In this document: positions 1 to 42,800 of the stretch, one piece after another
Layout of the letters: each line of letters starts with the position of its first letter
Position numbering within the stretch: position 1 is the stretch's first letter
NCBI RefSeq assembly: GCF_040938485.1
Contig: NW_027271701.1
Span: 186,001-250,000, forward strand
Length of the DNA: 64,000 nucleotides
Reading direction: 5' to 3'
Source: Diadema antillarum
Taxonomy: Eukaryota
Notes under the pieces: generated by a model
Database searches by the model: none
Seen by the model: the letters and a program-made list of their open reading frames with translations, nothing else
What the model was told of the DNA's origin: nothing
Made by a program: the position numbers and the translations under genes

Positions 1-1894
1 GTTTGGATCTGGCGCTGATGAACTTCATCACCTTTTGCCAAGCTTGCTTCGAGGTAGGCTGATTAAGTCTCGTAAGGTATCCCTGTCCTGGTAGCTCAAT
101 CCTCTCCCAACATTCCTGTAGAACATTCATACCAAGAATCCCTTGGACTGAGTCAGGTTCCCTTCTTTCAGCAGAATCAGCCAGGACCAAGACAACCCTC
201 TCCCGGACTATCTCTCCCAGGACCTTGATATCTGTCTCAAAGCATCCGACGTAGGGGATAGTACTGCCATTAGCAGAGACTAGGGTGAATGGGGAAGGAA
301 TCTCCTTCAACACTATGCCACGCGGTTCAAGGTGTTCCCTGTAGAAACTCTCACAGATCGTTGTAACTTGAGAGCCTGGGTCCAGCAAGCAGGATACTTC
401 AACACCCTCGAATTCGACTTCAACTGCATAACAATCTCCGACTGTCTTGGCCAGGAAGTCAGTATCCACATTCTCAGAACTTGCATCAACACGTGAGGTT
501 CCAGCCCTTATTGGTCCTTCATTCCTCCGATCTGGCTGAGGCCTCTGTTGGTCTTGAGTGACCCTCTGATCTGGACTAGATGCCTGCTGTTCTGGTCTCC
601 CAGATCTGGCATTATACTGGTTCCGTGTAGGGCTTGGTTGATTCACTCCTTCGGAATGAGACCAATGCTGATGCTGTTGCGCCCGCTGATCTTGGAACCT
701 CTGTTGATCAGGTTGAGTAAAACGCTCACCAGTCTGGAACTGTGGTTGGTATTGCTGATATGCGTACTGATTAGGGTAAGGCCCCTGCTGACACCTTTCA
801 GGGCACGCTCGTGCAAAATGTCCATACATCCCACATGCATAACAGGCTCCTCTTGGTTGTCTCATTGGGTAGGCAGGACGAGGACCACCAGTACCAGGGG
901 GAACTGAACGAAGAGGTTGCACAACTTCATGCACTGCTTGCACCAGGTTCTCTCCCATCTTCTTGAGGGCCACCAATATCTCAGACGAAGGGGTTTGGAG
1001 CCCACCCTGTTTGGTCTGTAACGCCGCTTGTCTTGCACTGTCATGACCTGTAATTCGCGACTCCTCCCGTCCGGACCTGCGGATTGCGAACTCTCTCAGG
1101 TCTCGAAACTTGATAGAGCTATCTCACTCGTAACGGTCCCGGCAAGCATTCCGGAGGATCTGGTCATCCAATCCCTCGATGAACTACTCAACAAGAATGA
1201 TGTTCGGCTCTGAATACAGCTTTTCATCTCGGCGACAGAGATTGTTGAACCGTCTCTCCAAATCGATGGCATAGTCTCGTAGAGGCTCTCCCCTTCTCTG
1301 TTTCCTTTGCAGGAATAACCTCTGCAGCTCTCCAAGGTTCTGGGCACCTGAGTAAGAGTCTTGCAAAAACTGGAGGATCTCCTCTGCAGTCTTCTCGTCC
1401 TTAATAAGGGCCTTGACCTCAGCCTTGGGGAGTCCTCGCACAAAATCAAGGAGGTACGAAGTTTTTTCTTCTTCGGAGATGTCGTACCTCGAGAAGGCAG
1501 CTCTGATACTGGTGATGAAGTCGTCCACCTCCGACGCCCTTCCTTCGAACACCGGGATCTTCCGTTCTGGGGCCATTACAAACTTGGAAGACTTTCTCAT
1601 AGACAGCTCCTGGAGTTGCGTTCTCAGGTCTGCTAACTCTTTGCTCGTTGCATCACCGTCTGCGTGACCAGGAACACAAGGGACGTAAACCTTGTCTTTC
1701 CAGCCGCCAACTGGGGGTTGAATTTGCCCTTGCACTGCCATGGCTCGTCTCTTTCTACCATCCTCCTCCGTGAAAACCAGTCCAGTGGCCTGAGGATGAA
1801 CACCTTGTAGAACTTCCAACAACAGGTGTCCCTCACTTTGCAAGGGATATTCAGAGATATCCCCCGGTGCATCTTCAATCTGAATGTAAGACAT
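1..1894 (-). pseudogene. Gag-protease polyprotein with an N-terminal TDP-43-NTD-like domain; two premature stops
   Basis: One frame from ATG 1894: TDP43_N-like domain (1894-1670), capsid-like KIPVFEG...QRKQRRGEPLRDYAIDL, stop TAG 1186-1184 (in ILVE*FIEGL, expected EQFIEGL), stop TGA 1126-1124, zinc knuckle CYACGMYGHFARAC (844-803), Q/P-rich linker, protease LLDPGSQVT (Asp codon 382-380; canonical DTG is DPG here) and GILGMNVL; the frame stays open to position 1. Confidence 0.92.
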
Positions 1895-2960
1895 CTTCAA
1901 CAATATTATAACTTGCTAGTTATACATAAACAACAAAGGTTTAGCCTTCTTTTCAAAGAAAGAAACAATCAAAACGTTTCTTTTCCTTTACAAAAAAGAA
2001 GGGAACACTGATGGGAAAACCTGGCCCACCTCCAATAACTTGCAGTCACAATTGCAACTGAATCATCCCTTGTCAAAAAATGATCTTACAATACTCTCAC
2101 GGGGAATGGTATTAACTGACCATCACAATCAATCAATCCCCCTAAGTATACACACATGCATGGGTACCAGCAATATCACTGTGACATGACAAGAAGTTAT
2201 GAATACCATCACATATAAACATGCAATGACATTGGATATATAACTGTAGCCCTACAATACACCTTCCTCATTCATACATGTACAGTATAGCATGTCATAT
2301 CAATCAGTTACAGACATTTGTGGAACTTGGTTAATGCTATCCACACCTGTCCAATACAGTTTTTCAATCTGTAACAACGCCCTGTCAATCCGTCCTTCGC
2401 GACAATCGTCCGCTCTTTGACGGTGTTGAGTCCATGAAACGCTCTAGTCTTCACCACAACACAATCTCAAAGTTCCATAAGATAGCTGTTACCAAAACGT
2501 AGCCACATCACCGCTAGCAGGATGCTATCAGTCTACGTCATATACCAGCATCAGTCACAGCGCCGAAGAACGGTAGTCCCACTGGTTCAATGTTCCTCTG
2601 CTGCTATTCAATCCCGTCGCTAAATCACTGCAGCACCACAGTCAGCGGTCACCCAAAATGCGGAAAGTTACATCAGTTCCAATTTAATCCCCTTCTCGCT
2701 ATGAAGACATGTCCGCGTGCGTAAAATCAACCCCCTTCCCGGTACAACAACAGTTTGCACCTGCTGTACACGAATGCTACATCTGTCTGGTCTGCTCCCT
2801 CATACGAAGTCAGGTCCACGAAGACATCCAACATCCATCCTGCTACAGCAACAGACTCATGGCGCCAACCACAAGACATAAGGCGCGTCCAACTCTCTCA
2901 GTTCCTACTGTAGCACACCGCCATCGATATCCTACACGGACGGGTATGCAATGATCCGTC

Positions 2961-2982
2961 TCGAATCCCATCCTCGTCGCCA
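2961..2982 (-). other. Primer-binding site complementary to the 3' end of tRNA-Ser(GCU)
   Basis: Plus strand TCGAATCCCATCCTCGTCGCCA matches the last 22 nt (with CCA) of metazoan tRNA-Ser(GCU) as I recall it; lies 7 nt inside the LTR end at 2990. Confidence 0.85.
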
Positions 2983-2989
2983 AAAATAG

Positions 2990-3282
2990 CTGTAGTGGGG
3001 GAGATGGTGGTGTCCTCTCGGGGGATTATTGCGGGGTGTGGGTGTATGTGTGTTGAACTGGATGATTTACTAGAAGTGTGATGGGGTGCTAGGTGTGTGA
3101 GTACGCCCTACTGGTTCTGTTGCGGGGTTCTTATGGCAATCCAGTGGGTAAGGGGCGAACACGAGGCACCATGAAAGATGACCGAGTGGGAGACGGATCT
3201 GTATAAAATAATGGGAGAGGTCCCCAACAAAATTGACAGAGGCCCTCTATAGTCCAATGACAGCATATTGTGATCCATCACA
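2990..3282 (-). repeat. Putative 5' LTR (~293 bp)
   Basis: Minus strand begins TGTGATG at 3282 and ends CCCCCACTACA at 2990 just before the PBS. The partner LTR is outside the window, so the outer boundary is unconfirmed. Confidence 0.6.
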
Positions 3283-3311
3283 TTAAGATCTTGCTTCAGA
3301 CTGTTGGATGT

Positions 3312-3316
<5 letters not shown>

Positions 3317-3351
<35 letters not shown>

Positions 3352-3400
3352 AAAGAGAGGGGAGAGAGACAGAAAGAGGTAGATAAGGGGAGAGAGATAA
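3317..3400. repeat. (GA)n microsatellite and purine-rich tract
   Basis: Pure GA run ~3317-3348, then degenerate GA-rich sequence. Confidence 0.95.
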
Positions 3401-7443: not shown

Positions 7444-7740
7444 AGAGTTATATACTGTAGTTATGTCATCAGTACTTTGTGTCCTATCTCCATTGCAAAG
7501 CGTATTCACATTGGTATTTGTCCCTGGAATCCGCGGTTACAAGCTTTGCTTTTGCGGTTCCTTCATGTTTCACATCTTACCGAGAATAGTCTTTTATGTA
7601 GGTACGCTGACAACCTTTCTTGTCATAATCCACTGTAGGGCCTACATTATATTTTGTAGTTTTCTTGTTTGTATTCTGTTTTGCTTATAGATTTTATGTC
7701 TAACATTAATGTCAAGTGAAATACAAAAATAAACGTCCTG
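5830..7740 (+). repeat. Three dispersed LINE 3'-tail-like remnants (~5830-5875, ~6585-6632, ~7520-7565)
   Basis: Shared motif TACAAGC(N)GCTTTT(T) closed by a short stem (e.g. GAGGGACCC...GGGTCCCTC), each with an AATAAA or AAATAA tract downstream; resembles CR1/L2-group 3' ends. Confidence 0.4.
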
Positions 7741-10235
7741 GAACTGTTCACTGTTTCTCGAATGTAAGACCAGTGCAGTTTCAATCATTCAACCAAATTC
7801 AAAAAGAGCAATACAAAGCGTCACACACCTAATTCGACCAATCAATTTGTTTATATGTTCCTTAATAATGCATCGAGTGGGCTTAGTTTCCCAGGGCTAG
7901 TTTGCCCCGGGTTTTATGTCATTTTTCAAAACCCGTTCTGTACCAGAGACTTTGGACAAAAGTGTTCAAGGCTATGACATTTTCTGGACCAATCGAAGCA
8001 CACGAGGAGTTAATAAGCGTCGGATGTGATTCGTGTTATTCGTTAAGGGATGACCAATGGTGTAGCTTACACATAATGTAGAGAGTCAAACAGATGTTCG
8101 AACATAAAATCTCTTTCACAAGACCTATGCGTGTGTTTTGAATCAAATAAATCAGTGACTTGATATCGGCAGTGCCGTTATTAATTATCGTCATGAACTT
8201 GAAGTAGCTATTGGACAACAAGAATAAACAAAGCATACACAGACACATTTTCTTCGTTCCTGTTAATAAACGAAAATCTGTCATGGCAGTGCTGTAGAAT
8301 CGGCTTTCACATTTCAGACTTGTGATGTAAACCTTGGTTTTAACTTGTATGGAAAATAACAATATCTGAGATTTTGCCACTCTGCTTCAATTTTCTATAG
8401 TATGTCCCTCCCCCTCCCCCCCCAAAAAAAAAATGACAATCAGATTTTTGCAATGAAAACATCCATATGATTAAATTGTCTAAATGCTACTTCAGGGTCT
8501 TAGAATATAACATTTTAGCTCTATTTTGCAGAAAACCCCATTCGATTTGGTGAAGCTGTCACAGAAAAATATTGATTGTTGTCAAACATGTCATGAGTTT
8601 GATTCTTCCAAGTTTAGCACTTCGATGATCTTGTGTGTGAATATACACAGTAGTAGACAGAACTTGGAGGGAAGAGATTCCTGACATCCTCTACAAAATT
8701 CCTCATTTCTCTTTGACCACTGAAGTAAATCGAATGGGATTTTCTGTAAGATGTGGGTAATGAGTTTAAGTTTCATACCTTGAATTTGTATTTAGATTGA
8801 TTCGATATTTTTAAAAATATCATTGCGGAGGGTCCCGTTGTATTTTTCGGGAGACACACGTTATAGCGTACGTGCCTCCACTAATATACTGTAAAAAAGT
8901 AAATGAAAAAAAAAATACCCCCGAAACAAAACCATCCAAATTAAACAAGAGGCAAGTTATGTGTACAGTGAACAACAGCTACGTTTATGTTGCCCTCTAC
9001 ATGTAGGTATATGTGTATCATATATCCTTTTTTTTCAGAGAACAAGAGAGAGAGGTCGCGCCTTAAATGAACATTTCTTGCTTAGAGTGTGATATGACAT
9101 ATATACATGACATAAGGTAGATGAAATCTGCCTTGCAGACAGATATTACTTTTTGCTCAGTATCTTTGCTGCCTATACCTCATTATAATGATCAGATAGT
9201 CTCATGCATTCCTTCGAAAGAAAGATTAAAGATGCAGAGTGTACATTTCGGTGTGAACGGTACTTCGTATTTGATGCGACCCGAGACAACGTGACAAGAT
9301 TATATTCATTCAAATTAGGGATTTTTGCATCGAGTTGTTGTTATTCTTATTGCAAATGATTGACAGAATTCCCTTCGTCGACGTAAATGGGCACCAATTA
9401 TTCAGTGTTTGGAGTTATAACGTAGATAAAAGAGTCATGGGCACATACTCGAGGTATATGTACGACCTCCTGATTGCTAGACAGACGTTATACTTACTAG
9501 ACTGTAATAAGGACTTAAAAGTATTTGAATGAAGTGATTAATTGATATAAACGAATAATGTATAGATATGCAGTACCCGCTGCTACGTGGGATATGAGAA
9601 CTATCACTGGCGATAAGGCAGACGGTCGGTCAGTGTCGGCAGTTAAGGTGCATGTAACGCCTGTCTAGCAATCGAGAGGTCATGGATTCTAACCCCACCC
9701 TATGTGTGCCCATAATTGGTTCTCAATCATGGCTATTGCTCTAAGCACTGAATGATCGTGCTTACGTCAATGGAGAGCACTGTCTTAATCAGTCAGTCAT
9801 TTTTTTTTATTCTGTATTCGAATTTCGTTCAATGCAACAAAATTCACACTCAAAAATACAAAACAAAACATTTTATAAAGACAAAATGCATTATACACAA
9901 ACATTATACAGAGATGTCAATCTTACATCATGACTCATATGACCAAAAACGAAATCCGTTTTTTTTTAAAAATATATACACATATATTCTAGCAAGGTGC
10001 CCGCAAACGGGAACACGATAATTTGCTCGAGGCTTTTGGGCGCATTTCACCATTTGTTTCTTGGAATATGAATATGTTTTTTACTTTTTTCTCTTCTTTT
10101 TTACCTTCTTTATTTCTTCTTTCTGAAAACCAACCAATCAAAAACCGACAGATATCAGAAAATAATATTCAAAATCTAAATTTAGTTTAACAAAAAACAA
10201 AAAATAAAGCCAGGCTTCATTAAGTTACAATCACA

Positions 10236-10237
<2 letters not shown>

Positions 10238-10270
<33 letters not shown>
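10238..10270. repeat. (CA)n microsatellite
   Basis: Uninterrupted CA run. Confidence 0.95.
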
Positions 10271-10273
<3 letters not shown>

Positions 10274-11304
10274 AATTATCTAAACGTATTAAAATACGTA
10301 AGCGTTGTGAAATATAGTTTTTCACTCAGTCATACCATGGCCGACTTCAGTATCCCCTCCATAATCTCACTGAATAAAATCAATTGGTATTTCAATTCAC
10401 AAATGTTTGAGTACTAAGCCATACTTATGCAATTAAGTGTTTATTAGTGATTGATACACACTAGAGGAAAAGCAAACAAGAGCTTGTGTAACGTTACGTT
10501 TTGTAAACAAGATATGATTTATCAGATCAAATCACACAGGACCATGTTTGCTCTGGCTGCCACTTAGATCATAATTTGTTTAAAAAAGATAACGTTCGGT
10601 CCAAACAGAAGGACGATTGTATAATGGATCTCTCTGAGGTGGAAGTCAGCTACTTGACCTTCAAAGATTTAGCAAGTTTTGCTAGTTTTACATACTTGTG
10701 TGTTTTTTTTTTTATACAGGTTGATTGCCTGCGTGAATGATTTATCCCAGCATAACTCATTAGAGCCCCTATACCAAGCCTGCATTGATCCATCCAGCTC
10801 AAGAATATTTAGTGTTGTTGGCCACGTGTACGCTGATGCATAATAAGCCATTTCAGGGTTCCACTTTGACCATTAACAGAAAAAGGTCGTTTGTACCAGC
10901 AGAGCATGTTGGTTTTTAAATGCAAGAGATGAGCATCTATCTGATGTAATCAGTAATCCTTAGAAGTGGTGCTTGCCATCACATCCACCTGACAGCAAAA
11001 ACAAAATCTGGCAATATCGATAGAAAATGATTGTTAATACATTGTACATTCAATGCAAATTAATGAATGCTTTCCAAAGTGCAAAATGATGGATAATTCT
11101 GGTCACGTCTGCGCAAGTTAATCCTTTGTTTGAACATGACTGATGATTTCCATAAATTGTCACATCGGGCAAGCTAATGCATTCTGTTGCTTGCAAACTG
11201 ATGGAGTTTGCAAGTCATTTGTACCCATGTGCACTTATGGTAGAATATGACACCTCCTCTTGCCTCCTCGATCATTCTAACATATGACTTGTGAAGTGAC
11301 TTTA

Positions 11305-11306
<2 letters not shown>

Positions 11307-11341
<35 letters not shown>
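11307..11341. repeat. (TG)n microsatellite
   Basis: Uninterrupted TG run. Confidence 0.95.
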
Positions 11342-11342
<1 letters not shown>

Positions 11343-11499
11343 TAGACATCTGTGAATTATTTCTATGCAGTCTACAAATCTCAGTATCGATACACACTTT
11401 GCTTGTTTTGCTTTGTTTCGGTTAATGCACAAGACGTACAATATCAATGAGGCACCAATTGTAGCAAACGAGTAAATACATAATTATGGTAATATACAT

Positions 11500-11755
11500 A
11501 TAAGTAACAAAGCTGCAACAAAGTTCATGCTGTATTCACCAACGGTTTATTTCTTCACACAAATTTTCGAGCGTCTCGCCGCCCTTTCTCAAGTGATGAT
11601 ACTTGATGCCTGTAAAATTGCATAATCACAATGCCCTTTCTTAAGTGTTGATGTATCAACACTTGAGAAAGGGCTGCGAGACGCTCGAAAGTTTGTGTGA
11701 AGAAATAAACCGTTGGTGAATACAGCATGAACTTTGTTGCAGCTTTGTTACTTAT
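11500..11755. mobile_element. ~100-bp-arm inverted repeat; Penelope-like pseudo-LTR foldback with hammerhead-like core
   Basis: Arms 11500-11602 and 11653-11755 are near-perfect reverse complements. Right arm has TTGAGAA-A-GGGC...GCTC-GAAA (11663-11690), then GTGTG and AATAAA. Confidence 0.7.
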
Positions 11756-11788
11756 CTTTTTATCTTGCCAACACGTGGACTACCTTAT

Positions 11789-11790
<2 letters not shown>

Positions 11791-11839
<49 letters not shown>
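11791..11839. repeat. (TA)n microsatellite
   Basis: Uninterrupted AT run. Confidence 0.95.
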
Positions 11840-11841
<2 letters not shown>

Positions 11842-13429
11842 GTATATGTTTACATTAATTCATTGTACATCCTATAGCTGCGTATTATTTGTCATTTTAC
11901 TTTGTTGTATTTTCATTGAGAAATATGAAAATAAATTGAAAATATACAGATGACACTAGTGGCAAAGATTTGAGATTTTTTGAAGTACCTCAATATGCAA
12001 GTTTGATAAATTTATCACACCACTTTTTTATTTCTATATTTACAGATATTCATATTCTTTTTCCATTTTTCAGAACAAAGGGTATCATTGTGAAATAATT
12101 GTGACTATCGATATGCTCTTGCACAAGCTTAGTGAACTACACTATTCACCTTTTGTGTGTGTGTGTGTGATGAAGATGGTGTCTTCCAAATTGATCAAGC
12201 CGAAATAGGTATTTATTTAGTCAACATTAACTTTGCTCATTCTAATAATCCTAACGAAACTGTCTATGGCTAATACACTACATTAAGTACAATGTACATC
12301 TCTTTCAAATTATAATAATTTATTATTACGATGAAAATATTTCCTATTTGCATGCTTTTACAGTATTTCAAAGACAGACATTCTGGGACTGGAATCCATA
12401 TGTCCCATGTAGAAAGGACGGCAGTGCTCAATATTTTCTCGCATCAAAGTATGATAATTTGCCTGAAGAGAAATACAGCATAACAAGCAAATATCTACAT
12501 TGGTGCATATCAGTCAGTTCGCTCTTGCACAAATAATTATGTATTGAATTCCTTCAGGCTTTTTACCAATTTTACTCAATCCGAAAGAATATATTTCGAC
12601 CGTGCATATTTGGGTGGTCGCATATAAATGTGTACAAATAATGTGTGACCATCATACACTTCAAAACATGCACAATTTCATTACAGGCTCTAGGGACACT
12701 AAACAGTACTTGCGTACTCAGATACAATGCTATACATAACAGTGAAAATATTATGGACCATGTCTCCCGACATTTTTTTGTTGTTTCCTAAAGGGGCTTT
12801 ATGCTTTAATTATCCCTGTCTTGCATCAAATATCCTTCCATGGAAACTCCATACTCTATGCGTGTTTGCACGATAAAGAAGACAAATATTAGTCGAAAAA
12901 ATTCTATCAAAAGTAATCTTTGTGAACAGTTTGTTTTTTGTTTCAAGTTTCATGGCACTGGAAATCAAAGAAACAGCATACACGGGGTTGATCCGGATGT
13001 CAATATAACAATAAAGCAATCAACATACAGCATTCAGTGACCTCGTATTAAATCTGTACATGGTGTTCGGTGGTTTCGGCAGCAGGAAACCGAACTGATC
13101 AACAGGAAATTATACATGATGTGGAGTACTTTTAGAATGTTGGACAGGAACACGCATATCGACAAAAACGAAATTCACGCACATAGAGTTTCGTAACAAT
13201 CATGCGAAATGGAGTCCTTATGAATTACCAAATTGCACTAGGTGCCGTTAATAAATGACGAGTGCAATATACTTCTTATTTTAGAGTATAAGTTAAGTTG
13301 TCCTTTGTTTGTATATGGGCTTATTCATTAGATCAACATCTAGGCCTACTGGACTGGGTAGACTATCTTTCTGCGCCAGGGTTTGTAATCTGGCGGAGAT
13401 TTCGACAAAATGATTATCATTCTACAATT

Positions 13430-13439
13430 GTCACGTGAC
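13430..13439. promoter_or_regulatory. GTCACGTGAC palindrome (CLEAR/E-box consensus) 175 bp upstream of the lipocalin 1 ATG
   Basis: Exact 10-bp match to the MiT/TFE CLEAR consensus; function untested. Confidence 0.35.
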
Positions 13440-13614
13440 ATCCTTGTGACCCTGTTTCGTCACCGAGCAATGAAACAATGCTGGTCAGTCCAACGCACCG
13501 CCACGCCTTTAAAGAGCGTTTGGGCTTATGACGCAGTGGAGCTGTATTCGAGTATACCGCAGTGTATTGACGTATCCAACTTCCAGCAGACATTATTAAT
13601 CTTCGAACGAGGTG

Positions 13615-15323
13615 ATGGCGGTCGCACGTGCTGTTTTGCTTCTGGCCCTTCTCGGCCTTACAGCCGCAAAGCCCTTGGGACTTCTCGGAGACTTGTTTTC
13701 TGCTGTTACCGACATCCGCACCGCGCCCGGCATCCACACCGTGCCCGAACTCGACGTCGAACAATATCTGGGACGATGGTATCAGGTAACTTTGAAGGGC
13801 AGTGCCACAACATGTTCAAGTTAACTTTATCAAATAGATAACTGTATCGAGATTGATACAAAACGGACTTCAGATAAACAAAATAATAGAATCTTAAAGT
13901 TTCACGTGTTTTAAAACAAAACAAAAACCGAAAGTGGTATTGGTCGCACCCACATATCGATCCACACCGCAAGATGCGATGATGTCATCACCTCGTAATT
14001 CTCCCACTTTGAGTGTATATACACAAATATCATCTAATTATGTTTTTGTTGAAAATTCAGCAATTACAACCAATATTCACATTTCTAACTTGGCGTCGTT
14101 GTTGCTATAGTCTTTTACGAAACTATACGATAAGTTTGATGCGGAAGATACGTCTTATTATTTTTTTTTTTTCGGTTGCATTGTCGGAGTACATTCGGAG
14201 AACAATATTGCCGAATGTTGGACTTTGCCGTTTTTCGACATTCGCGTCCATCTCAAACTGTTCGCGTGCCCAGTGAAATCATTCACTAAAATCAGTCCTT
14301 TAACTTGGCGTCATAATGATTGCCATAAGCTCTTAAATGAAGATATGTCTCATTTTCGGCTGCATTGTCGAAGTACATTTCGGAGAACAACTTTTCCGAT
14401 GTTGGACTTTGCCATTTTTTCGACATTCGCTTCCATCTCAAAAAGTTCGCGTGCTCAGTTATGAGCCCTTGAACTTGGCGTCATAATTGCTATCGGTAGA
14501 CTTTTAGAAAACTATACATTGATTTAATGACGAGGATACACTACGTCTTATTTTGTTTATATCATATCTAACAAAGGAAGTGTTTATAGTATTGATTTTT
14601 TTTTGTATGTTCAAATCAATGATAGACTCTTAAGTAAGGAAATTGTCATATATGCCAATTTTAGCGTAATGGTTGTGAGTAATATCACTCTTTTGGAAAA
14701 CATTTGAACATTTGAAATTCCATAGCTTTATTTTTCATTAATTTTAATGAAACTTCTATTACTCTTAATTTGTCTGATTAGTACTTTATGTAATTATCAT
14801 ATGATAGTAGGGAATTATCGTGAAATGCACATAGGTGCTAATTTCCAACTTCTGAAGTGTCTTTTGTGTAATAATTGTAGCTTCAAGATTTCCATTGATG
14901 ACCGAAATAAAAGTTATGTAGACTGTCGGAATCATAAAGCATACTGCGTAGCTTGATTCCACAACAAAGTAGGAGTCTCGGCATTGCATTTGCATTATGC
15001 TTTCAGCAGCAAAGATAATGACCTACTTTGGAGTCTAGAATAATCAAACGCTGAAATACTTATCTGAACTGTTTTCTTTTCATCCTACAGATGTTCACTG
15101 ATTTTGTCGTCACCTCTACATTTGAGAGAAATGCGGTGTGTGTTACAGCTGACTGTGAGTTTTCCAGAAACACCCATTATTTTTTGTTTATTTTTTTTTG
15201 TGGTAAATACGTGAACTTTTTTCTTTTCTTTTGTGAAGGAATAATGCCTGTTAAGATGTCACTCTTTCAGTCGAAAGTACGAAAAAGAGGGTTTTCATTA
15301 ATATTATTAATATTATTATTTCA

Positions 15324-15367
<44 letters not shown>

Positions 15368-17141
15368 CATTATTGTTATTATCATTTCGCTCATTGCCTG
15401 AATGGCTGTATTTTTGTTTTAATGCTTCTTCGGGCTAATCTTGAGGAGTGATGTATTTATCTTTGCTGTTATCATTTTGTCTAAACTTGAATTGAATGTG
15501 GAGGGGCTGGTTATCTTATCAGCCCATATATTATTGAGATGAATAGATAAATTGGACAGTGTCGACTTTGTAAAACAGAGAAAAGATTTTATTCGGTGAT
15601 TACAAGTTAAACATGGACGACAAATTGTTAAGGGTTTATAAACGGGAATTGTGTAAAATGACCTCCCGACAATGCTGGGTTGATAGTGGCAGGACCAAAT
15701 GGGGTAGAAAAAAAGTACAACAATGCCGACTCTATGGAGGCCTGTACCCTCGGAAGATATACAATAACAGCTTTCATTACCATTACTCATACAATAAAGT
15801 AGTGTTATATATCATTAGTATTTGTCCTCAACATCACTTCATCATTATTCATGATGAATGGAATTCTATGATATTACTATTAATACCATTGATGATATCA
15901 TTATCATTGTTATGTATTGTTATTAATGTTACAATCCTCTGAAATTGTACATTGAATGGTTATGTACTGTATCTATATGTTAGAACTGCCCTGTGTTCTG
16001 TATATGTGCATGCATCATGCAAACAAAACAAATTTCCAGAAATGGACAGTAAAATCGAATTGAATTGAGGTGAATTGATTTGAATTGTCACTTTTTCATG
16101 AACGATGAGTTAGATCATCATAAATAAGTATCTAAGACATAACCAGATCTTAACCATCTCTATTTCTATAGATGGACTTAACGGGCCAGGAAACATTTCC
16201 GTGTACAACGCGAACAGGGAGAAGACACCCGACGGTGACCTGAACGACATCCGGGGCTATGCAACTGTTCCCGACCCAAGCCAACCCGGCAAACTCGAAG
16301 TGAAGTTCGATTCGGTACCGGGTGTATTGGGTCAATGTGAGTCGACGCTTTATTCATTCAATCATGAATTAATGTATTCATTAATTAAAACCAACGGAAT
16401 CCCATTTTCTTTGCTCATTTTTCCACTAATGAATCATATTATTTCTGGTCAGTTTTCTTCTGTCTGCATGTGTTACATCAATAAAAAATGTCAACAAACC
16501 ATCACATTTTTCATTTGTTACATCAATAAAAACGTCGACAAACCATCAAATTTTTCATTAATTCATTCCCTCTCTCTAGCTGTCTCCCTCCCTCTGCAAA
16601 TACTTCACACATAATTCTTACGAAATAGACTCTTTCCGGGTTATTCGAGTCATGTTATGTATCAAGTCTAATAAATTTATCTTTCATCTGTTATCACACT
16701 TTGAGAAAGACAACAACAATAACAACAAAAAACACCAGAAAATATAATACGGGTCTAATGAAAATCTGATAGCTGATGCTAATGAAAATAAGTCATAGAA
16801 ATTTCGAAAATGAAACACAATCAATACATGTATGCTATTTTCATACTCTTCATTAAGTTTGTTGTCTCCAGTGATGCTCGCTCTCTGTTCAATTGCATTT
16901 TGCAGACTGGGTGATTCGACTTGGCCCCGTCGTTCAGGGGAAGTACGACTATTCCGTCGTTACGGACTCCTTCAAGATGACCCTCTTCGTCCTAGCTCGA
17001 GACCCGGACAAGTTCCGCACAGATTACCAGGACGATGTCTTGGCCTTCCTTGCGGACCAGGGCTTCACGAGGTTCTACAACCGACCCATCGAGACACTCC
17101 AATCTGAAGACTGTCAGTACGCACCTAAACCGCCAAACTGA
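13615..17141 (+). CDS. Secreted lipocalin 1 (apolipoprotein D/Blc-like), 211 aa, 4 exons
   Basis: Exons 13615-13785, 15091-15154, 16172-16336, 16906-17141; GT/AG, 636 nt. Signal peptide, SCR1 YLGRWYQ, GKLEVKF, YWVIRLGP, TLFVLAR, two Cys. Confidence 0.93.
14086..14555. repeat. Imperfect tandem repeat, ~170-215 bp unit, ~2.4 copies (lipocalin 1 intron 1)
   Basis: AACTTGGCGTC recurs at ~14087, ~14302 and ~14472; the block GCATTGTCG...GTTCGCGTG is shared by units 1 and 2. Confidence 0.8.
15301..15380. repeat. (ATT)n microsatellite
   Basis: Long ATT run; produces the poly-Leu in ORF 15091..15438. Confidence 0.95.
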
Positions 17142-19862: not shown

Positions 19863-22800
19863 ATGGCGGTTCCCTTTTTTCTCGTTTGTTTGCTGTCTCT
19901 TCTTTCTGGAGCGACGCCCGCGGCTCTCCGACACTTCCGCGGTAAAAAGGACATCCACACCGTTACAGAACTGAAACTCGACAACTACTATGGCCGCTGG
20001 TATGAGGTGCGTGTGCTTTCTAATATATTTTTAGTATATTTCTAGTATATTTTTGATGAATGTATGTAATATTGATTGATGTTTTGTCATAGAGAGTAAA
20101 TGGTAGTTTAATTGTTATGATGAAAAATATGTGTGATTATGATAATGATCATTTCAGGTAATAAGAAGTAGAGGTTGGTGAAGTTTATAAGGAGGGCGAA
20201 AAGAGAAGATGAAGAAAAAGAATATGAGTAGAGGTTGAAGGAGGGGAAGTGAAGTAGAGGATGGTGAAGTTTATAAGGAGGGCGAAAAGAGAAGATGAAG
20301 AAAAAGAATATGAGTAGATGAAAATGACGTTGATTTTAGTAAGATTTTTGTATAAACATAGGTTATTTATGAAAATAAGGAAAAAGGTGGTAGAAATTGT
20401 TAAATCTTACTAAAATCAATATATTCATTTAGTGCGAAAGAAAGACCAAAAAGCAATGATTTGTTTTGAACTAGATGCGACAGGTCGTGAAATGTTAAAC
20501 TTATTTTCATCAACTTCTTTCATGGGCTTATTAAAGAATGAATAAACTAGAATCGGTAAGATAATACTTCTCTTGTTTACCCTATTTATAAGCCTACACC
20601 TTACAGATTATAGAGGCCTACTACTATGAACACGCCTTGGTCTACACCTATCTTAATATTTCCAGTGTTAAACGGAATGAAATACGTGTAGTTGGGTCTA
20701 CAGGAAGAAATAATTAGGGTGGCCTCGAAAAGGTCTCCCATGTCTGAGAATTTTCAACGAAGTACCACAGATCTGTAAACACTGCGGTATCCTTGTTTGC
20801 ACTATAACTATTTGATGGTCAAGGAATCGACGTTCGATGATCAGGTCATTGCCAATTTATACACTGAGCAGTAGGGTCAGTTGTATAGTGGAAAAAAGCT
20901 GATCACATGACTTCATGACATGTCCCATACACTCAAAGGAAAACAATACAAACACGCTGGAAAATAAGACAACAGGAGACGACTAGAAATTAGATCCATT
21001 TCCCTGAATCTTAACATGATGATCTTATCTCTATGCCCCCAGAAAATCATTAGTAAGTATAGTATAAGGTCTTATTTACCCAGGGTAGCCTCTTCAGTGT
21101 TGCCACTGCTCTACCAGAGGGCCCTGCCATTATTATTATCCTAGCATTGCCGGGTACTCGTACCCATTTATACACCTGGGTCAAGAGGGACATGGTGGGA
21201 AAAACATCTTGTCCAAGGACGTAAGCGCTGGGCGGGACTTGAACTCGGGCCGTGCCGATCGGGAATCGGGAGTCGTATCCACTGTGCCACAGCGCCCCCA
21301 CATACATATTAGACATATAATATGAGTTTGCTAGCAAAATGGGTTAAGCACAAATGTCAAACATTTTAAAGTGAGTCCATCATCAGATGGGCAATATCAA
21401 ACCTTTCCAATTATTAACGGTCTATCACTTGTTGCATAACAAAGAATATTCCTGAAGATATTTGCCAATATTCTTGATTATGATTAAAACTATCCCTTAT
21501 TTTCTAATCATTTTCTGTCTTTAGAACCTCTCGCAAGCGCCTCAAATTGCCAAGAATGGATTTATTTAACTCGTTTTGCAATCAAACTCCTCATTAATGA
21601 TGGCGCAACGTCTCACTTTACTTTGTCCGCCCTTGGAATGATCACTAATCCTATCACGATCTGCAATCGAGAAACAATGATTTACGATCCTATTATAATA
21701 AATAAATGGAGAAATAACAGATGTAAGCCTATATTACAGATTACAACATGATTCATGCTTGAATACATATCAGCTTACGTGGCAATTCCAGTATTGTTCA
21801 ACAACAATTTCTACTTTTTACTGCGTCTCTGTGCAGATGTATTCAGACCTGATCGTCAAGTCAACATTTGAAAGAAACTCATACTGCACCACAGCAACTT
21901 GTAAGTAAACTTATCTTGACTTTAGTCAGATTCATAGACAGTTACAAAGCATACTCTTCTCCAAATGCTGTTAAGGGTTTAAAAAGTTGTAATGTATTTG
22001 AAAAACGTCTATATACACGTTAAGGAGTAGTTAACCATAGGAAGGCAGTTCATCTTCAAACCACCTCGAGTGTCAATACATGATGATTACAAGGCGCGAA
22101 TTATGGACATTAAAAGGAAAGTTATAGTTTGAGCGTTTGGCAAGCATATACGCAGTCATCCTATGTTCAAAGCTCTAGTCCTGCACTTATTATATTAGTG
22201 TCAAAGACACTACAGTAGGATCTTTGTTTTAGTTCAATGTTTCCGTGACTGTATAACGTCTTTTGTAACTGTAATTCTCATAACCACTACATGCATTTCA
22301 AAATAGATTCACAAGTTATGCAGTAAATATGTCCTTGACACTGAAGGATTTTTCTTCTTTCTTTCTTTCTTTCTTCTTTTTTTCATTCAGATGGCAAGGG
22401 AGACAACAATACAGTCACTGTTTTCAACTCCGGCCGCCTCGGCTCGCCCACCGGCTCACCAAGTGAAATCTCTGGCTATGCCTACGTCCCCGACCCGGCG
22501 GAACCGGGCAAACTCAAGCTGAAGTTCCCCAACATTCCCCTCGGCGATTGTAAGTGAATCAAAAATATCTATAATCACACATTTAGCACTTAAGTCAAGT
22601 CAAAACATTTTAGACGTAAAAAAACAAACAAACAAACCCGATGCTTTTTATAGTTTTACTTTAAGTACATGTTTCAAGAAAAGTAAAGTTATTCATAGTA
22701 GCCCCTTACATGTAGGCCTATTTTCTCCGAATAGTTCATATTCAAATTACTTGCTACTCGATTTTTTTTTTCCCTCTGAAAGGACGAATAAGGTAGGTAG

Positions 22801-36800: not shown

Positions 36801-39800
36801 TAGTATAAAAACGCAAACAAGGGATGATGGTGGTTGCCTAGCAACAGAAAAAAAAAAGTTTTGTTAGAAGAAAGTCCTACTTTTTAAAATCAGCATGACA
36901 CACACGGTTTAAATTAGAATTATGAAGGCCATCATCCCAGTTATTTCATGATTCTGGTATGAAAAGAAAGCTCTTCAGCTACTCTGCAAATAAAACAATT
37001 CAGAAAAAAAATACCCTTCTACTTTTGAAGATAAGGTTAGATATTCCTCGGGGTGCCGCAAACTGGATCCCTGCAGCAAACTGGGTCCGCTGCTCTAGTG
37101 ATCACTACTTAGTCCAAGCTACATCTAGATTCCATGGCACAAGGTGGGCAAAGGGTCCATTGTGCCACCTCCGTGTATTTTCTTTCTTTTTCAAGCAATT
37201 GCTCTAAAATTTGGCGCAGATGTAAAACAAGTCATGATCTAAATTTGGTTCCTTAAGAAATTGAATGGTGATATGGTGACCTTCAGATATTCATTATCTG
37301 AAGGTTGCCACGTGGGGGCGCTATTTCATAAAACATGCCATAATGTAGTGAAAATGTAGACCATAACAATGATTTACATTTTTAAAGGTTTTTAAAAATG
37401 TGTTTTAGCCAAAAAATGAAAAAAAATAACTGTCAAATATTTTAAAACAAAAATATACAGGACTTAATTTCATTTCCATCGAAAACCTTTATTTCCACAA
37501 GCTCTTCCTTTAAACCACTTTCATAAAATCTCAGGGAATATTTCACTTATTAAATTATTTTTTTCTGAATTTTCATTTGCACTTTAGGTCACATTTTATA
37601 CCAACAGTAGACGCTTAATTTATATTATAAACTTGTTTGTGTATGAACTCTCTTTTTCAGATATGGATGCCTTTTCACTCAATGTATCCCACCAGCCGGT
37701 CAAGCGGTCAGTTGTGAGTGAGAGTACTTCTCCATCTATTCATGATGGACCACTACCTGAGAAGCGAACAACTAGAGCTAGCATTGCCCCAAGAGATCTC
37801 AGGAAATGTATCTTTTGTCAAGCAATGACCTATGTCAAGTCACACTCAGGTAGTAGGGTGGCAGAGACTCTTGTATCTTGCCAATCTCAGGAGGTTGCCG
37901 AAAACATCCAAAGAGCCGCAGAAGTCAGAGAAGATGAAGAACTCCTACTAGCCATCAGAGATATTGCAGTCACACACATCAGATACCATAAGAGTTGTCA
38001 CAAACGCTTCACGAAGCGAGAATCTTTGGAACGATTGGCTCAGAAGAAAGATGCTCACATTACAAGCCCATATGATGCTGCATTTGATGCCTTAAAGGAA
38101 TACATCAATACTGAAATAATTAAGGATATGAAGGTAATGCAGATGGCTGATCTTCTTAGGAAGTTCAAAGAGCTCCTCTTTGATGCTGGCATTGAATCTG
38201 ACTATCGATCAGAAAAACTTAAAAGAAGAATAGTGAGCCACTATGGAAATCAGTTGTCTTTTTGGCATCCGAAGAATCGTTCCGAGTCTGAGATGGTATT
38301 CCTTGAAGAAGTACCAAAGGGCCAAATTGTTGAGGCAGGTGTACAGTCTGCATCTACTTCTGTGGAAGAAGATGCATGGAGCAGCGACATCATCTCATAT
38401 GATGAAAGTGAGGAAAAAAGCTTGCAACATGTAGCAGTTATCCTACGACAGGCTCTACTTCAGGTGAATTCAGCGGTCTCCCAACCCATTAGGCCTGAAG
38501 ATATAGATGAGAACAATGTTCACATTCCGAATTCTGTGTACAACCTGCTGGCCTGCATTATTCACGGAAAATGCAAGTTTCAGGTAGATCAACGGGTTTC
38601 TGTACCAGCTACCATACATCGTCAAGTCCTCTCTATCAGTCAAGATCTCATACATGCCGTGAGTCGGGGACGAGTAAAAACTCCAAAGCATGTGGCACTT
38701 CCTTTCCTTGTCAAAACCGTAGGTGGATCTTCAGAAATTATAACTGTCTTGAACAGAATGGGTCATGGTTTGTCTTACACACAGGTAGAAGAGATGGAAA
38801 CTTCTCTTGCAGAAAATGTCTCAAAGACTTACTCCAACTTGCCAAGCAACTGTCACAGTGGCGTATTTGGGACATTTTGTTGGGATAACAGTAACCTTCA
38901 AGAAGAGACGCTCTCTGGACGTGGAACTACACACTGCACTAGTGGCATAGTACTACAAACTAGACGTCAAGAAACAGGGCTGTCACAGTCTTCCACCAAT
39001 GCTCAAAACACAAACTCTGACGGCGCCATCAACAATCGCAGGCGTTCCATTAAGCCCCAGCCAAATGCAGTAATGCCGTACCAATCAGTTCCACGGAAAG
39101 GACCAGAGAAACTAGTAGTTGATCAAGATCTTCTGACAGCATCGGCTTCTGAAAATGCTGTAGCAAGGAAAAATGACTTTGCTTGGTTCTTGACTAGGTT
39201 GGCGCCTGAGGAAGTGATGTTCCAAGAATGTGATGACAAACATCAGAATGTCCCCAGCTGGACTGCTTTTAACAGGCTTATTCAGGAGAGCGTACCAAGT
39301 CTGAGCACTATCAGCTATTGCCCGTCAATCGATGCCAGCCCGACAGAGACGTCTACTGTTTACACCTTGTTGAGAAAGTCACTTGCCATGGCAGATGAGC
39401 TAAAGCAAACAGATTGTCCTGTGGTGTGTGATCTGGCAATCTACTCAAAGATCATGCAGATAATCTGGCAGAGACCCACTGAGTTTGCCAGAATTGTTCC
39501 ACGTCTAGGGTCATTTCACGTCGCCTGTTGCTTCCTGTCTGTGATTGGGAAAAGGTTTGGAGATGCAGGTTTGGCAGACATCTTGACTGAGAGTGGGGTA
39601 ATAGCTGCCGGCAGTGTCAATGGAGTACTTCAAGGTAAGCACTACAACCGAGCTGTACGTATGCACAAGCTTCTGTATGAAGCCCTGGAACGTATCCGAT
39701 GGAGAGAGTTTGGCAAGTCACTCAATCACAAAGAGAACAAAGTCGTCCATGAGAGCATCCTGGCTGTCCTTTCAAGCCTACGTGAGCATAAGCAGCCAAG

Positions 39801-42800
39801 AGACTTCCAGGAGCTAATGAGCATGACAGAATTTGACCAGCTTTTGGACACCTACAATGGATTTGCAGGAACTTCGAATGGTCCAATGAAAGCATTCTGG
39901 AACAGCTATTTGGAGATGGTGGGTCTATTGCTCCAATTCTTGAGAGCTACAAGAGAAGGAAATTGGTCTCTGCACTTGGCATGCATTGCGCAAATGATTC
40001 CACACATGTTCGCCTATGACAATGTGAACTATGCACGCTACTTAGTAGTGTACTGGGGTGAGATGACAACTTTACCAGACACACACCCTGAAGCCTACGA
40101 GCACTTCTCCAGTGGCGAGTTTGCTGTTCAACGCAACAGTGACTGTGGATTCAGTCAGGTGGCAGTGGACCAAACAATTGAACAAACTCTTAACAGGAGC
40201 TTGAAAACAAAGGGAGGAATTGTAGGATACAGCCTCAAGAAAGGTGCAGTCTACCGTTGGATACTTACCGCTCATATTCGAGCTGCTATTGCTGACAAGT
40301 GCAAGGAGATGTTTGGCGTCGAGAATGAGGTTTCCTACCATATGGAAACAACCAAGCCACGACTGAGAAGAGATGAAAGTGACGTACAGATGCTCATTGA
40401 TACCATTTTAGCTTGGGGTAATCCATTCAAGGAATCCGACACACTAATCAGCTTAGCATCAGGCAGCGCAGCGAATGATGACATGACACGTGATCTGTGC
40501 GAGGCTAAGGCTAGAGGACGAACAGCTATGATGGTATTTGTGCAACAACAGCTTACAGTTAAGAACTTCTTCACTCCACTTCGAAAGCTGCAGTTGAAGA
40601 CCTTTGGAACCAAGAAGATCGAGGGTAACAAGAAAGCAAAGCAGGATGCCACGAGGAAGACAGATAGTTCCCTCTTTGCTCGAATGCTTGTTGTCGCTCA
40701 AGTTCGCCATCTGGATATGAGACACGTTTTGCAACATGAACTTACCTCAATCCCGTCATCTCTTGCCAGTGCTGGTGGAGGTTTGATGAAGACAGCCAAA
40801 TCTTCTCTTGTGCATGTTCTAGAGGAAAACATTGAATCTGCTACCAGTGAAGCTACGTGCTGCGTCATAGATGCAATGGCAATGCTACAAGCAATGTCAA
40901 ACATCCCACCTACTTTTGGTGAGCTCGCAGACAGGATTTTGGGAAACGTCATATCTGCCGCAGGTGCTGCTACACGGATAGATCTCGTTGCTGATCAGTA
41001 CCCTTCATTATCTATCAAAGGTATGATTGTTTAGATTTTTATGTATCCCCATCCCTATTTGTAAATATTGTAGATTAATTCAGAAGGATTGTATTCATTG
41101 CTAGGTTTGATTTTGTTCAATTATTAATGAAGATGTTATGTTTAAAAAGCTGATATTGCATGCTTCCATCATTCCGCATATAAGGGGAAAGTGTGAAACA
41201 ATTCAAAATCTATTGGTTTAAAATTAGATAAGGTGTAATGAACTCCAAACCCAAACAATCTTCCTTTAACCACTTACAACATGGCTGTTTTTAATGAAAA
41301 ATTGATACAACTGAATTAATGAATTTTGCTGTTGCAGATTCAGAGCGGGAACAGAGAGCTTCAAGTGGGCAGCTGCTTACAAAGGCTACGTCAGCTGCTC
41401 AGAGATGTCCTACGCAGTGGAAGAAGTACCTTTCCCACGGAGGCAGTAAGACGCAGCTCTTCTGTTTTCTGGCTGAGGAATGGCAGTCTTTGCGGTAAGT
41501 TTACAATTATTCAATGATTACTTAAAATAAAAACAAATTCAATTCCTGAAGTATAGTAAAGATCTTTGGATATTATCATGACACCACAGTGTTTTCTTAA
41601 CATTACAGTTTTGCAGAGAAGCTGAACAAGAGGATGTTATATCTAACACGAGGTGACGAATGTCTGCAGCTTGAGTCCAAAGGAGGGGAAGTGATATGCA
41701 AGAATGTTCCTGATCTGCATAGTACACAAGAAGAGGCGGACAGCAGAATGTTTCTACATGCTAAACATGCTTCTGCTGCGAGACACAGAAAGGTAGTGAA
41801 GGCCCTGTACCCATTAAACACTGCCAACATGCATGTGTGAAAGTAAAAATTGTACTCATTCCAAGTAAAATAAAAAATGTGCCTGTAGACCAACAGCTGA
41901 AATACATGTTCAGTTATCAAAACAATTTTCATTTTGGTCACCATATTATTGCAAATATCCGATTTCTATAGAATATGAGAGAAATGTCTTCGCCTCAGTC
42001 AGGCCCTTATCACCTCAGGTGTCATGCAGCATGTTAAAGCTCAGCAGATAATACAAGGTCAGGAGATTCTGCACGCTTCCACGGTCTAATGCAAATTTTA
42101 CTCATGTTCACTTTCAAGTGTTGCCTTCTACCTATTATTACAGTAAGTTAGGCAAATCATTCTATTCCTTTGTAGATTCTCATCAGGTCACCAGACACGG
42201 ACACGGAGGTGCTTGCGCTCTTCCATCAGCTGCAGATTCCTGCTACACTCTTCATTGAGAAGGGAACATCACACTCACAAAAGACAATCAACATTCGGGC
42301 ACTTGCCAATGAGCTAGGTGATGGTTTCTGTAAGGCACTACCTGGATTACACGCAATCACCGGATGTGATAGTGTTAGTGCCTTGGCCGGACGTGGTAAA
42401 AAGATGGCAGTGGATCTGGTGCAAAAGGACAGAAATCTGCTGAAACCCCTCCAGAGCCTTGGAAACAGTTTAGCTCTGTCCACTGGTTTGATTGAGCAGC
42501 TTGAAACATTTGTCTGCCGATTGTACAAGTGTGCTGCTGACACTGTGAATGAGGCACGGTATGAAACCTTCTGCAGGATGAAGATAGTACAGGTTGGTGT
42601 CTTGAATCATCCATTAAGAAATAAACAATAACGTACGCACATATTTTCACCGGCATTTGCAGCCAAGCAAATTAAATCCTCAGGAATTTATCAAATGAAT
42701 TAATAATGAATAAATGATGAACTTACGAGCTGAAACTCCGAACTGAATCAAAATCATATATTTCATTGCAGTCCCACAGGCTTCCACCGACTAAGCGCGC

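Follow-up and report, generated by a model that had tools for sequence, protein, structure and literature searches.

Does a Ty3/gypsy retrotransposon Gag begin with the N-terminal domain (NTD) of TDP-43, a host protein linked to retrotransposon control, and if so, what might the domain do there? This question was raised by a 64,000-nucleotide stretch of DNA on contig NW_027271701.1 (hereafter the window), which contains no N. A preliminary description had proposed that the first 75 residues of a Gag at positions 1670-1894 resemble the TDP-43 NTD, without stating the strand. Our analysis confirmed that these residues are encoded exactly at 1670-1894 on the minus strand, with the ATG at 1894, and every testable part of the proposed interpretation was supported. 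We found no description of such a fusion in the literature searched.

Homology of the Gag N-terminus to TDP-43

The 75 residues match the Pfam family TDP-43_N (PF18694) with an E-value of 6.2e-14 and 52.1 bits against a gathering score of 27.1, residues 3-72 aligning to profile positions 1-72 of 74. Relatives also pass this threshold. No other Pfam family matched residues 1-75 at E up to 10. A sequence search of the PDB returned only TDP-43 NTD chains (best 5x4f, E 3.6e-4). The preliminary description had estimated about 25 identities in 75 positions, which is roughly right: we counted 22 identities in 70 aligned positions of the HMMER alignment, and Foldseek gave 28-30%. Profile-profile comparison of Gag-only against TDP-43-only alignments further supported true homology (hhalign probability 99.1%, E 8e-19).

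The AlphaFold model of the domain (pLDDT 93.3) superposes on human TDP-43 NTD crystal structures, with 6t4b and 5mdi as the best Foldseek hits (TM 0.86, rmsd 1.5 A). The predicted fold agrees with that of the TDP-43 NTD, a five-stranded sheet packed on one helix plus a beta-hairpin, and the order of strand, strand, helix, strand, strand, strand is the same as in TDP-43 (known structures 5MDI, 6T4B, 6B1G and 2N4P). The core motifs PL, LLL, P.A.GL.[YF] and PP..GW..VY are shared. An intact homologous Gag, P0014, was modelled from an alignment holding no TDP-43 sequence, yet its residues 1-75 have pLDDT above 90 and match 6t4b and 5mdi at TM 0.85. The next-best structural matches are DIX and PB1 domains, for which Foldseek E is 0.02 or higher with TM 0.4-0.6; there is no sequence similarity to these head-to-tail polymerising domains, so this is a resemblance and not membership. 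The window protein is not a TDP-43 (TARDBP) orthologue, because the domain is followed by a retroelement capsid, nucleocapsid and protease instead of two RRMs and a glycine-rich tail, whereas true orthologues in the same search show TDP-43_N with RRM_1.

Organization of the element

The window holds the 5′ part of a dead copy of a Ty3/gypsy (Metaviridae) LTR retrotransposon, all on the minus strand. The 5′ LTR is placed at 2041-3282, with a well-supported start and a tentative end. DNA homology to L006, a relative that has a paired LTR, runs from window 3202 down to 3, and L006 carries that segment twice. The TG start TGTGATGG at 3282 resembles the LTR starts TGTGGAGTG of L006 and TGTAATGG of L003, an element from Patiria miniata. 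A candidate LTR end (...GACTGCA) lies at 2041, and six bases after it a TGG-initiated PBS-like 15-mer, TGGAGGTGGGCCAGG, occupies 2020-2034. The placement of Gag downstream of an LTR and PBS in the preliminary description is therefore only partly verified, as the 3′ LTR lies outside the window and the LTR end and the PBS are not proven. No cognate tRNA was identified, and the tRNA-Gly-like gene elsewhere in the window does not match the 15-mer.

The TDP-43 NTD homologue (1670-1894, Gag residues 1-75) is followed in the same frame by a linker at 1559-1669 (residues 76-112), comprising a predicted amphipathic helix and then the conserved motif VMAPERK. In the P0014 model, a helix at 83-98 is followed by coil. 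VMAPERK is the most conserved stretch between the NTD and the capsid in the Gag alignments, and its role as a protease site or capsid N-terminus is inferred only. The PNMA/Arc-like capsid region spans 1055-1558, with an approximate lower boundary. The Pfam PNMA hit is weak (E 7.3e-5, 22.7 bits, below the cut-off of 25). The homologous region of P0014 is predicted to fold into a two-lobed helical capsid whose best PDB matches are the PNMA2 capsid 8rb3 (E 2.3e-6), dArc1, Arc and MOAP1, with dArc1 and Arc close behind PNMA2.

Two in-frame stop codons, missed in the preliminary description, interrupt the capsid region: TAG at 1184-1186, after Gag residue 236, and TGA at 1124-1126, 19 codons after the first. 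Intact relatives read through the position of the first stop. The frame continues into a CCHC zinc knuckle at 797-847 (zf-CCHC, E 1.8e-4, 21.9 bits against a cut-off of 20.8) and a retroviral-type aspartic protease at 116-424 (Asp_protease_2, E 2.9e-6, 28.3 bits against 24.3), whose motif LLDPGSQVTT is shared with the Patiria pol. The polyprotein frame is open to base 2 (1-115) and is cut by the window edge, so that RT, RNase H and integrase are not in the window; relatives continue into these domains. A tblastn search of the window with the three Gag pieces found only the element itself.

Distribution and conservation of the fusion

The fusion is not restricted to this degraded copy. At least 15 Gag sequences in two clades, 30-40% identical in the domain, begin with it, and every complete N-terminus of this Gag family has it. 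One Gag that seemingly lacked the NTD (P0004) has a frameshifted TDP-43_N ORF just upstream. Five separate contigs of one assembly (ERZ26222911) carry copies of both clades. A metagenome scan found only two further loci; L012, from a further data set, has the domain too. Two long hits of the representative search were bacterial Ig/RTX repeat proteins and were discarded.

The Patiria miniata element (L003 7597-16980) is 9.4 kb long and looks recently active. It has 1350-bp LTRs (TG...CA) that are 100% identical, a TCTG target-site duplication on both sides, an intact 426-aa gag, and a 1385-aa pol in the -1 frame with RT (RVT_1, 397-555), RNase H (635-763) and integrase (925-1115). The relatives L005 and L010 agree with this domain order.

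Comparison of the window with L006 indicates that the domain is under purifying selection (pN 0.081 against pS 0.537). In more distant pairs pS is saturated at 0.7-0.9 while pN is 0.2-0.5, similar to the adjoining capsid start. All Gag NTDs are separated from all TDP-43, tandem and other NTDs by a branch with support 98/93, which is compatible with a single acquisition. We hold the homology, architecture, family-wide presence and selection with very high confidence.

An ancestor of the family most likely captured the domain from a host TDP-43-type gene. TDP-43_N with RRMs is widespread in animals, whereas the Gag version has so far been found only in one sea star and in marine assemblies. This origin remains an inference, because the tree is unrooted and host sequences are poorly sampled: the search for named orthologues returned only three flatworm proteins, and no named echinoderm TDP-43 is included. 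The direction and age of the transfer are thus not established.

Possible role of the domain in Gag

The most likely role of the domain, to which we assign a probability of roughly 0.5, is that of an N-terminal accessory module of Gag, in the slot filled by matrix in retroviruses and by an RRM-like domain in PNMA-type elements. In this reading, which is inferred without experimental or multimer-model evidence for self-association, a small folded protein-protein association unit raises the local Gag concentration or orients Gag and so helps particle assembly or RNP formation, possibly being released at the VMAPERK junction. PNMA-type Metaviridae and the mammalian PNMA family share a three-part Gag with a small folded accessory domain in front of a two-lobed capsid and a CCHC knuckle (Henriques et al., 2024, PMC11011659). 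In the present Gag, the accessory domain is a TDP-43_N beta-grasp/DIX-like fold and not the RRM-like domain of about 100 aa, no PNMA N-terminal domain was hit even at E 10, and the hosts are an echinoderm and marine assemblies, not vertebrates. Retroviral matrix occupies the same position, upstream of the capsid and joined by a linker, with a plausible role in assembly or targeting and possible proteolytic release, but its fold is unrelated, and Metaviridae are reported generally to lack an MA-like domain (PMC11011659).

TDP-43 polymerises through Glu14/Glu17/Glu21/Gln34 against Asn45/Ser48/Arg52/Arg55, and the double mutants E17A/E21A or R52A/R55A abolish polymerisation (Afroz et al., 2017, PMC5491494). 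The clade of the window keeps Glu at the Glu17 position (5 of 5), Arg or Lys at Arg52 (5 of 5) and an acid at Glu14, but has Met at Arg55 and mostly Gln at Glu21. The association in this clade may still use the TDP-43-style head-to-tail contact. The Patiria clade keeps Gln34 but has lost all four interface charges, with Gln/Arg/Cys/Lys at the Glu17 position, Val at Arg52 and Pro at Arg55, suggesting that the electrostatic interface has been replaced. Because loss of either charge pair stops polymerisation in human TDP-43, a conserved family-wide function cannot rest on the canonical interface. What is conserved across both clades is mostly the hydrophobic core and the structural Pro, Gly and Trp positions, which shows that the fold matters but not what it binds.

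Alternative explanations

A possible but less likely alternative is that the domain is kept as a generic ubiquitin-like/beta-grasp adaptor unrelated to polymerisation, for example binding another host factor, nucleic acid or membrane for trafficking, analogous in position but not in mechanism to the RRM-like domain of PNMA-type Gag. Conservation is concentrated in fold-determining residues while the interface residues vary between clades, and N-termini of Metaviridae Gag are a known hotspot for different accessory domains (PMC11011659). TDP-43_N also occurs in other contexts, including tandem pairs in small insect proteins, next to a NAB NCD2-like ORF, and in a 603-aa low-complexity protein. 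On the other hand, no candidate partner or binding surface was identified, the window clade retains part of the polymerisation interface, and the PB1 and DIX modules that follow TDP-43 among the structural matches are themselves self-associating, though only at E above 0.01.

Host mimicry appears unlikely. The preliminary description had suggested a decoy co-polymerising with host TDP-43 or targeting to TDP-43 granules, both of which remain hypotheses. As a mimic, the Gag domain would act either as a dominant-negative that blunts a retrotransposon repressor or as a handle that takes Gag or its RNA into TDP-43 nuclear or RNP assemblies. The true homology, the Glu17-Arg52 pair and acidic N-terminal face of the window clade, and the link between TDP-43 and retrotransposon control in Drosophila (PMC5354250, PMC7334854, PMC9944888) are in favor. 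In human cells, interface mutants were needed on both faces to stop mixing with the endogenous protein, which shows that NTDs with a matching interface do co-assemble (PMC5491494). However, the Patiria clade, which holds the young intact element, carries Arg/Gln/Cys/Lys where Glu17 would face the host's basic head, which weakens this reading as a family-wide function. The Gag NTDs are only about 30-40% identical to any sampled TDP-43 NTD and sit on their own long branch, whereas a mimic would be expected to track the nearly invariant host interface (Glu and Arg nearly invariant), although no TDP-43 from the relevant host species could be compared. If true at least in the clade that keeps the Glu17-Arg52 pair, co-assembly that disables or exploits a conserved regulator of retrotransposon RNA would reveal an arms race fought at a polymerisation interface and an ancient evolutionary link between TDP-43 and retroelements.

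A reverse origin, in which the TDP-43 NTD of animals derives from a retrotransposon Gag, is very improbable. The topology does not exclude it, as the Gag clade is not nested inside any sampled TDP-43 lineage and sits on the far side of the best-supported split, but this tree is unrooted, spans 80 columns and lacks taxon labels. TDP-43_N with RRMs is present in widely separated animals, including flatworm, insect and vertebrate entries, while the Gag form has one named host and otherwise comes from marine assemblies. Related PNMA-type capsids carry a different N-terminal domain, which suggests that the slot is the variable part. Finally, although the window copy is degraded and truncated by the window edge, a chance resemblance, an assembly chimera or a fusion unique to this copy is refuted by the profile scores, by the same architecture in independent assemblies from NCBI, ENA, Logan and JGI at 30-80% identity, by the intact Patiria element with its target-site duplication, and by purifying selection.

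Implications

TDP-43 is central to ALS and FTD, its N-terminal domain drives the physiological polymerisation needed for its function, and TDP-43 dysfunction is repeatedly linked to retrotransposon activation. The Gag domains provide natural, divergent variants, one set keeping part of the polymerisation interface and one having lost it, and they add a second kind of folded accessory domain to the N-terminal slot of PNMA/Arc-like Gag proteins. They also raise the question of whether mobile elements borrow host self-assembly modules to build particles or to interfere with host control. If the domain simply helps Gag assemble, this is a neat case of host-domain capture; if it engages host TDP-43, it would be a new kind of conflict between a mobile element and its host.

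Gag Frame and Flanking Regions

The feature lies on the minus strand, where an ATG at window 1894 opens a frame whose first 75 codons (1894-1670) encode exactly the peptide given in the preliminary description. The same frame continues to window base 2 and contains a capsid-like region with a weak Pfam PNMA hit (E 7.3e-5, 22.7 bits, under the cut-off of 25), a CCHC zinc knuckle at 847-797, and a retroviral-type aspartic protease at 424-116. Two points not mentioned in the preliminary description are that the frame is broken by two stop codons (TAG at 1186-1184 and TGA at 1126-1124), so the copy is degraded, and that the element runs off the window, so RT, RNase H, and integrase are not visible here. 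The window contains no N and no second copy.

Upstream, DNA homology to a related element (L006) begins at window 3202, and in L006 that segment occurs twice, as a paired LTR. A TG start at 3282 resembles the LTR starts of L006 and of the element identified in Patiria miniata, and a long (CT)n/(GA)n microsatellite (window about 3296-3400) lies directly outside this 5' boundary of the LTR. A candidate LTR end is located at 2041 and a TGG-initiated PBS-like 15-mer at 2034-2020, although both remain tentative because the 3' LTR is outside the window. A tRNA-Gly(CCC)-like gene was called by ARAGORN at 21223-21296 on the minus strand, but its 3' end does not match the PBS-like motif. On the plus strand, an exon-like ORF at 6952-7443 matches Pfam Rost ("protein rolling stone," E 8e-9) and is a host gene fragment about 3.7 kb from the LTR of the element. 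An uninterrupted ORF of 1133 aa at 37633-41034, also on the plus strand, has no Pfam family (E up to 0.01) and no PDB sequence match, and is probably a repeat- or transposon-type gene of unknown kind.

Homology to the TDP-43 N-Terminal Domain

Four independent lines of evidence reveal that the resemblance to TDP-43 is real. Pfam TDP-43_N matches residues 3-72 over profile positions 1-72 of 74 (E 6.2e-14, 52.1 bits, cut-off 27.1), and a sequence search of the PDB returns only TDP-43 NTD chains. A profile of Gag domains only aligns to a profile of TDP-43-type domains only with an hhalign probability of 99.1% and E 8e-19 over 75 columns. An AlphaFold model of window residues 1-78 has a pLDDT of 93.3 and superposes on the human TDP-43 NTD crystal structures 6t4b and 5mdi at TM 0.86 and rmsd 1.5 A, while the next fold classes (PB1, FERM lobe, and DIX) appear only at E above 0.01. 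Because the alignment behind that model included real TDP-43 domains, the stronger control is the model of the intact Patiria Gag, which was built from an alignment of Gag sequences alone; its residues 1-75 have pLDDT above 90 and match the same PDB entries at TM 0.85.

Distribution of the Gag Family

Searches with the 236-aa piece of the window, with the 75-aa domain against 1.8 billion representatives, and with the intact homologue returned at least 15 Gag sequences or fragments that begin with this domain, indicating that the fusion is not a one-off. These sequences (P-numbered here) fall into two clades. The window clade comprises the window copy, P0001, P0003, P0006, P0007, and P0041, which are 53-82% identical in the domain and share the motif EDGRKRR. 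The Patiria clade comprises P0002, P0012, P0014, P0017, P0035, and P0045-P0049, which are 28-40% identical to the window domain and share the motif KVVVPA. An apparently NTD-less member (P0004) is preceded on its contig by a frameshifted ORF that hits TDP-43_N. One long-read ENA assembly (ERZ26222911) holds five separate contigs with copies of both clades, and other copies come from a Tara Oceans assembly (L005), two further ENA assemblies (L001 and L002), Logan, and a JGI-indexed record (L012). The nearest copies to that of the window, at 72-86% DNA identity, are in an unlabelled ENA assembly.

The only named host of a relative is the sea star Patiria miniata. Its protein XP_038061574.1, annotated as "uncharacterized" or "CCHC-type domain-containing," is the gag of a 9384-bp element at positions 7597-16980 of the Patiria locus L003. 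The LTRs of this element are 1350 bp long, 100% identical, and of the TG...CA type, and TCTG is duplicated on both sides. It has an intact 426-aa gag and a 1385-aa pol in the -1 frame with RT, RNase H, and integrase, and lies within the span of a peroxidase gene. This looks like a very recent insertion of an element that may still be active. In the Patiria clade, pol is in the -1 frame and overlaps the end of gag (L003 11203-11300), which ends in a conserved ...LN..PPL motif, whereas in the window clade gag and protease are in one frame; the two clades therefore differ in how they express gag-pol.

Selection and Phylogeny

Between the window copy and L006, the NTD codons show pN 0.081 against pS 0.537, a ratio of about 0.09. 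In more distant pairs, synonymous sites are saturated (pS 0.7-0.9) while pN stays at 0.2-0.5, and the adjoining linker and capsid start behave the same way. The domain has therefore been under purifying selection while the family diversified.

A maximum-likelihood tree of 44 NTDs places all Gag domains on one side of a branch with 98/93 support and all TDP-43-type, tandem, and other NTDs on the other side, and the Patiria clade has 100/94 support. This topology is compatible with a single acquisition, although the tree is unrooted, has only 80 columns, and lacks named host sequences, and thus does not give the donor or the direction. One odd 603-aa non-Gag protein joins the Gag domains on a long branch. 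This low-complexity protein (P0020/P0044, 603-610 aa, JGI/IMG and Logan) carries a TDP-43_N-like domain (residues 137-209, motif DGRKR) that groups with the window-clade Gag domains and could represent a donor lineage, a domesticated copy, or a long-branch artifact.

TDP-43_N was also found in other contexts. A distinct, well-supported group of these domains (P0015, P0023, P0030, and P0040) has the motif GR[KR]R and KW instead of GW. In L011 (10001-11669, on a 2.4-Mb contig of ENA ERZ25067862), this domain lies 0.5 kb upstream of an ORF with a NAB NCD2 domain (PF04905, E 4e-9), which is possibly a NAB-like host gene that uses TDP-43_N. The small proteins P0010 (Gryllus longicercus KAK7873925.1), P0031 (Bradysia odoriphaga KAG4071505.1), and P0011, of 205-325 aa, are made of two tandem TDP-43_N domains without RRMs, another unremarked architecture of the domain.

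Predicted Architecture of Gag

In the model of the intact Patiria Gag, the NTD (1-75) is followed by a lower-confidence helix (83-98) and a coil that carries the motif VMAPERK. This motif, located between the NTD-linker and the capsid (window 1577-1557, Gag residues 106-112) and present in all relatives, is the most conserved short stretch of the whole Gag family and is a candidate protease cleavage site or capsid N-terminus. A two-lobed helical capsid follows (122-278, pLDDT about 90), and then a long helix (283-310) and a disordered tail holding the CCHC knuckle. The best solved-structure match of the capsid is the PNMA2 capsid (8rb3, E 2.3e-6), followed by dArc1, Arc, and MOAP1. PNMA-type Metaviridae of vertebrates have been shown to possess an RBD-CA-NC architecture with an RRM-like N-terminal domain, and Gag N-termini have been shown to be a hotspot of variation (Henriques et al., PMC11011659). 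The family described here has an apparently related capsid but a different module, probably derived from TDP-43, in the same slot.

Potential Function and Origin

In human TDP-43 the NTD polymerizes head-to-tail, with Glu17-Arg52 and Glu21-Arg55 forming salt bridges and Glu14, Gln34, Asn45, and Ser48 also contributing, and the double mutants E17A/E21A or R52A/R55A abolish polymerization (PMC5491494). We mapped these residues through the 44-sequence alignment. The window clade keeps Glu at the Glu17 position (5 of 5), Arg or Lys at Arg52 (5 of 5), and an acid at Glu14, but has Met at Arg55, and Glu21 is mostly Gln. The Patiria clade has Gln/Arg/Cys/Lys at Glu17, Val at Arg52, and Pro at Arg55, and keeps Gln34. 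Fold-determining residues are what both clades share.

We infer, with a probability of about 0.5, that the domain is an N-terminal association or assembly module of Gag, which may still work head-to-tail in the window clade, with a remodeled interface in the Patiria clade, and which is possibly released at the VMAPERK junction. An adaptor role unrelated to polymerization is another possibility. The suggestion in the preliminary description that the domain acts as a decoy or co-polymerizes with host TDP-43 stays possible for the window clade but is disfavored as a family-wide function, because the clade with the young intact element has lost every interface charge.

With regard to origin, capture from a host gene is more parsimonious, because TDP-43_N with RRMs occurs in distant animals and the N-terminal slot is the variable part of this Gag type; the reverse direction is not formally excluded. 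Full-text literature searches, which did not cover subscription journals, Repbase, or Dfam and thus cannot rule out an existing description, found nothing linking the TDP-43 NTD to a Gag protein. The Patiria protein is already in public databases with the Pfam hit, but unremarked. Metaviridae Gag proteins with an accessory domain at the N-terminus are already known, and what appears to be new in this family is the identity of that domain, a TDP-43_N module that was probably derived from a host.
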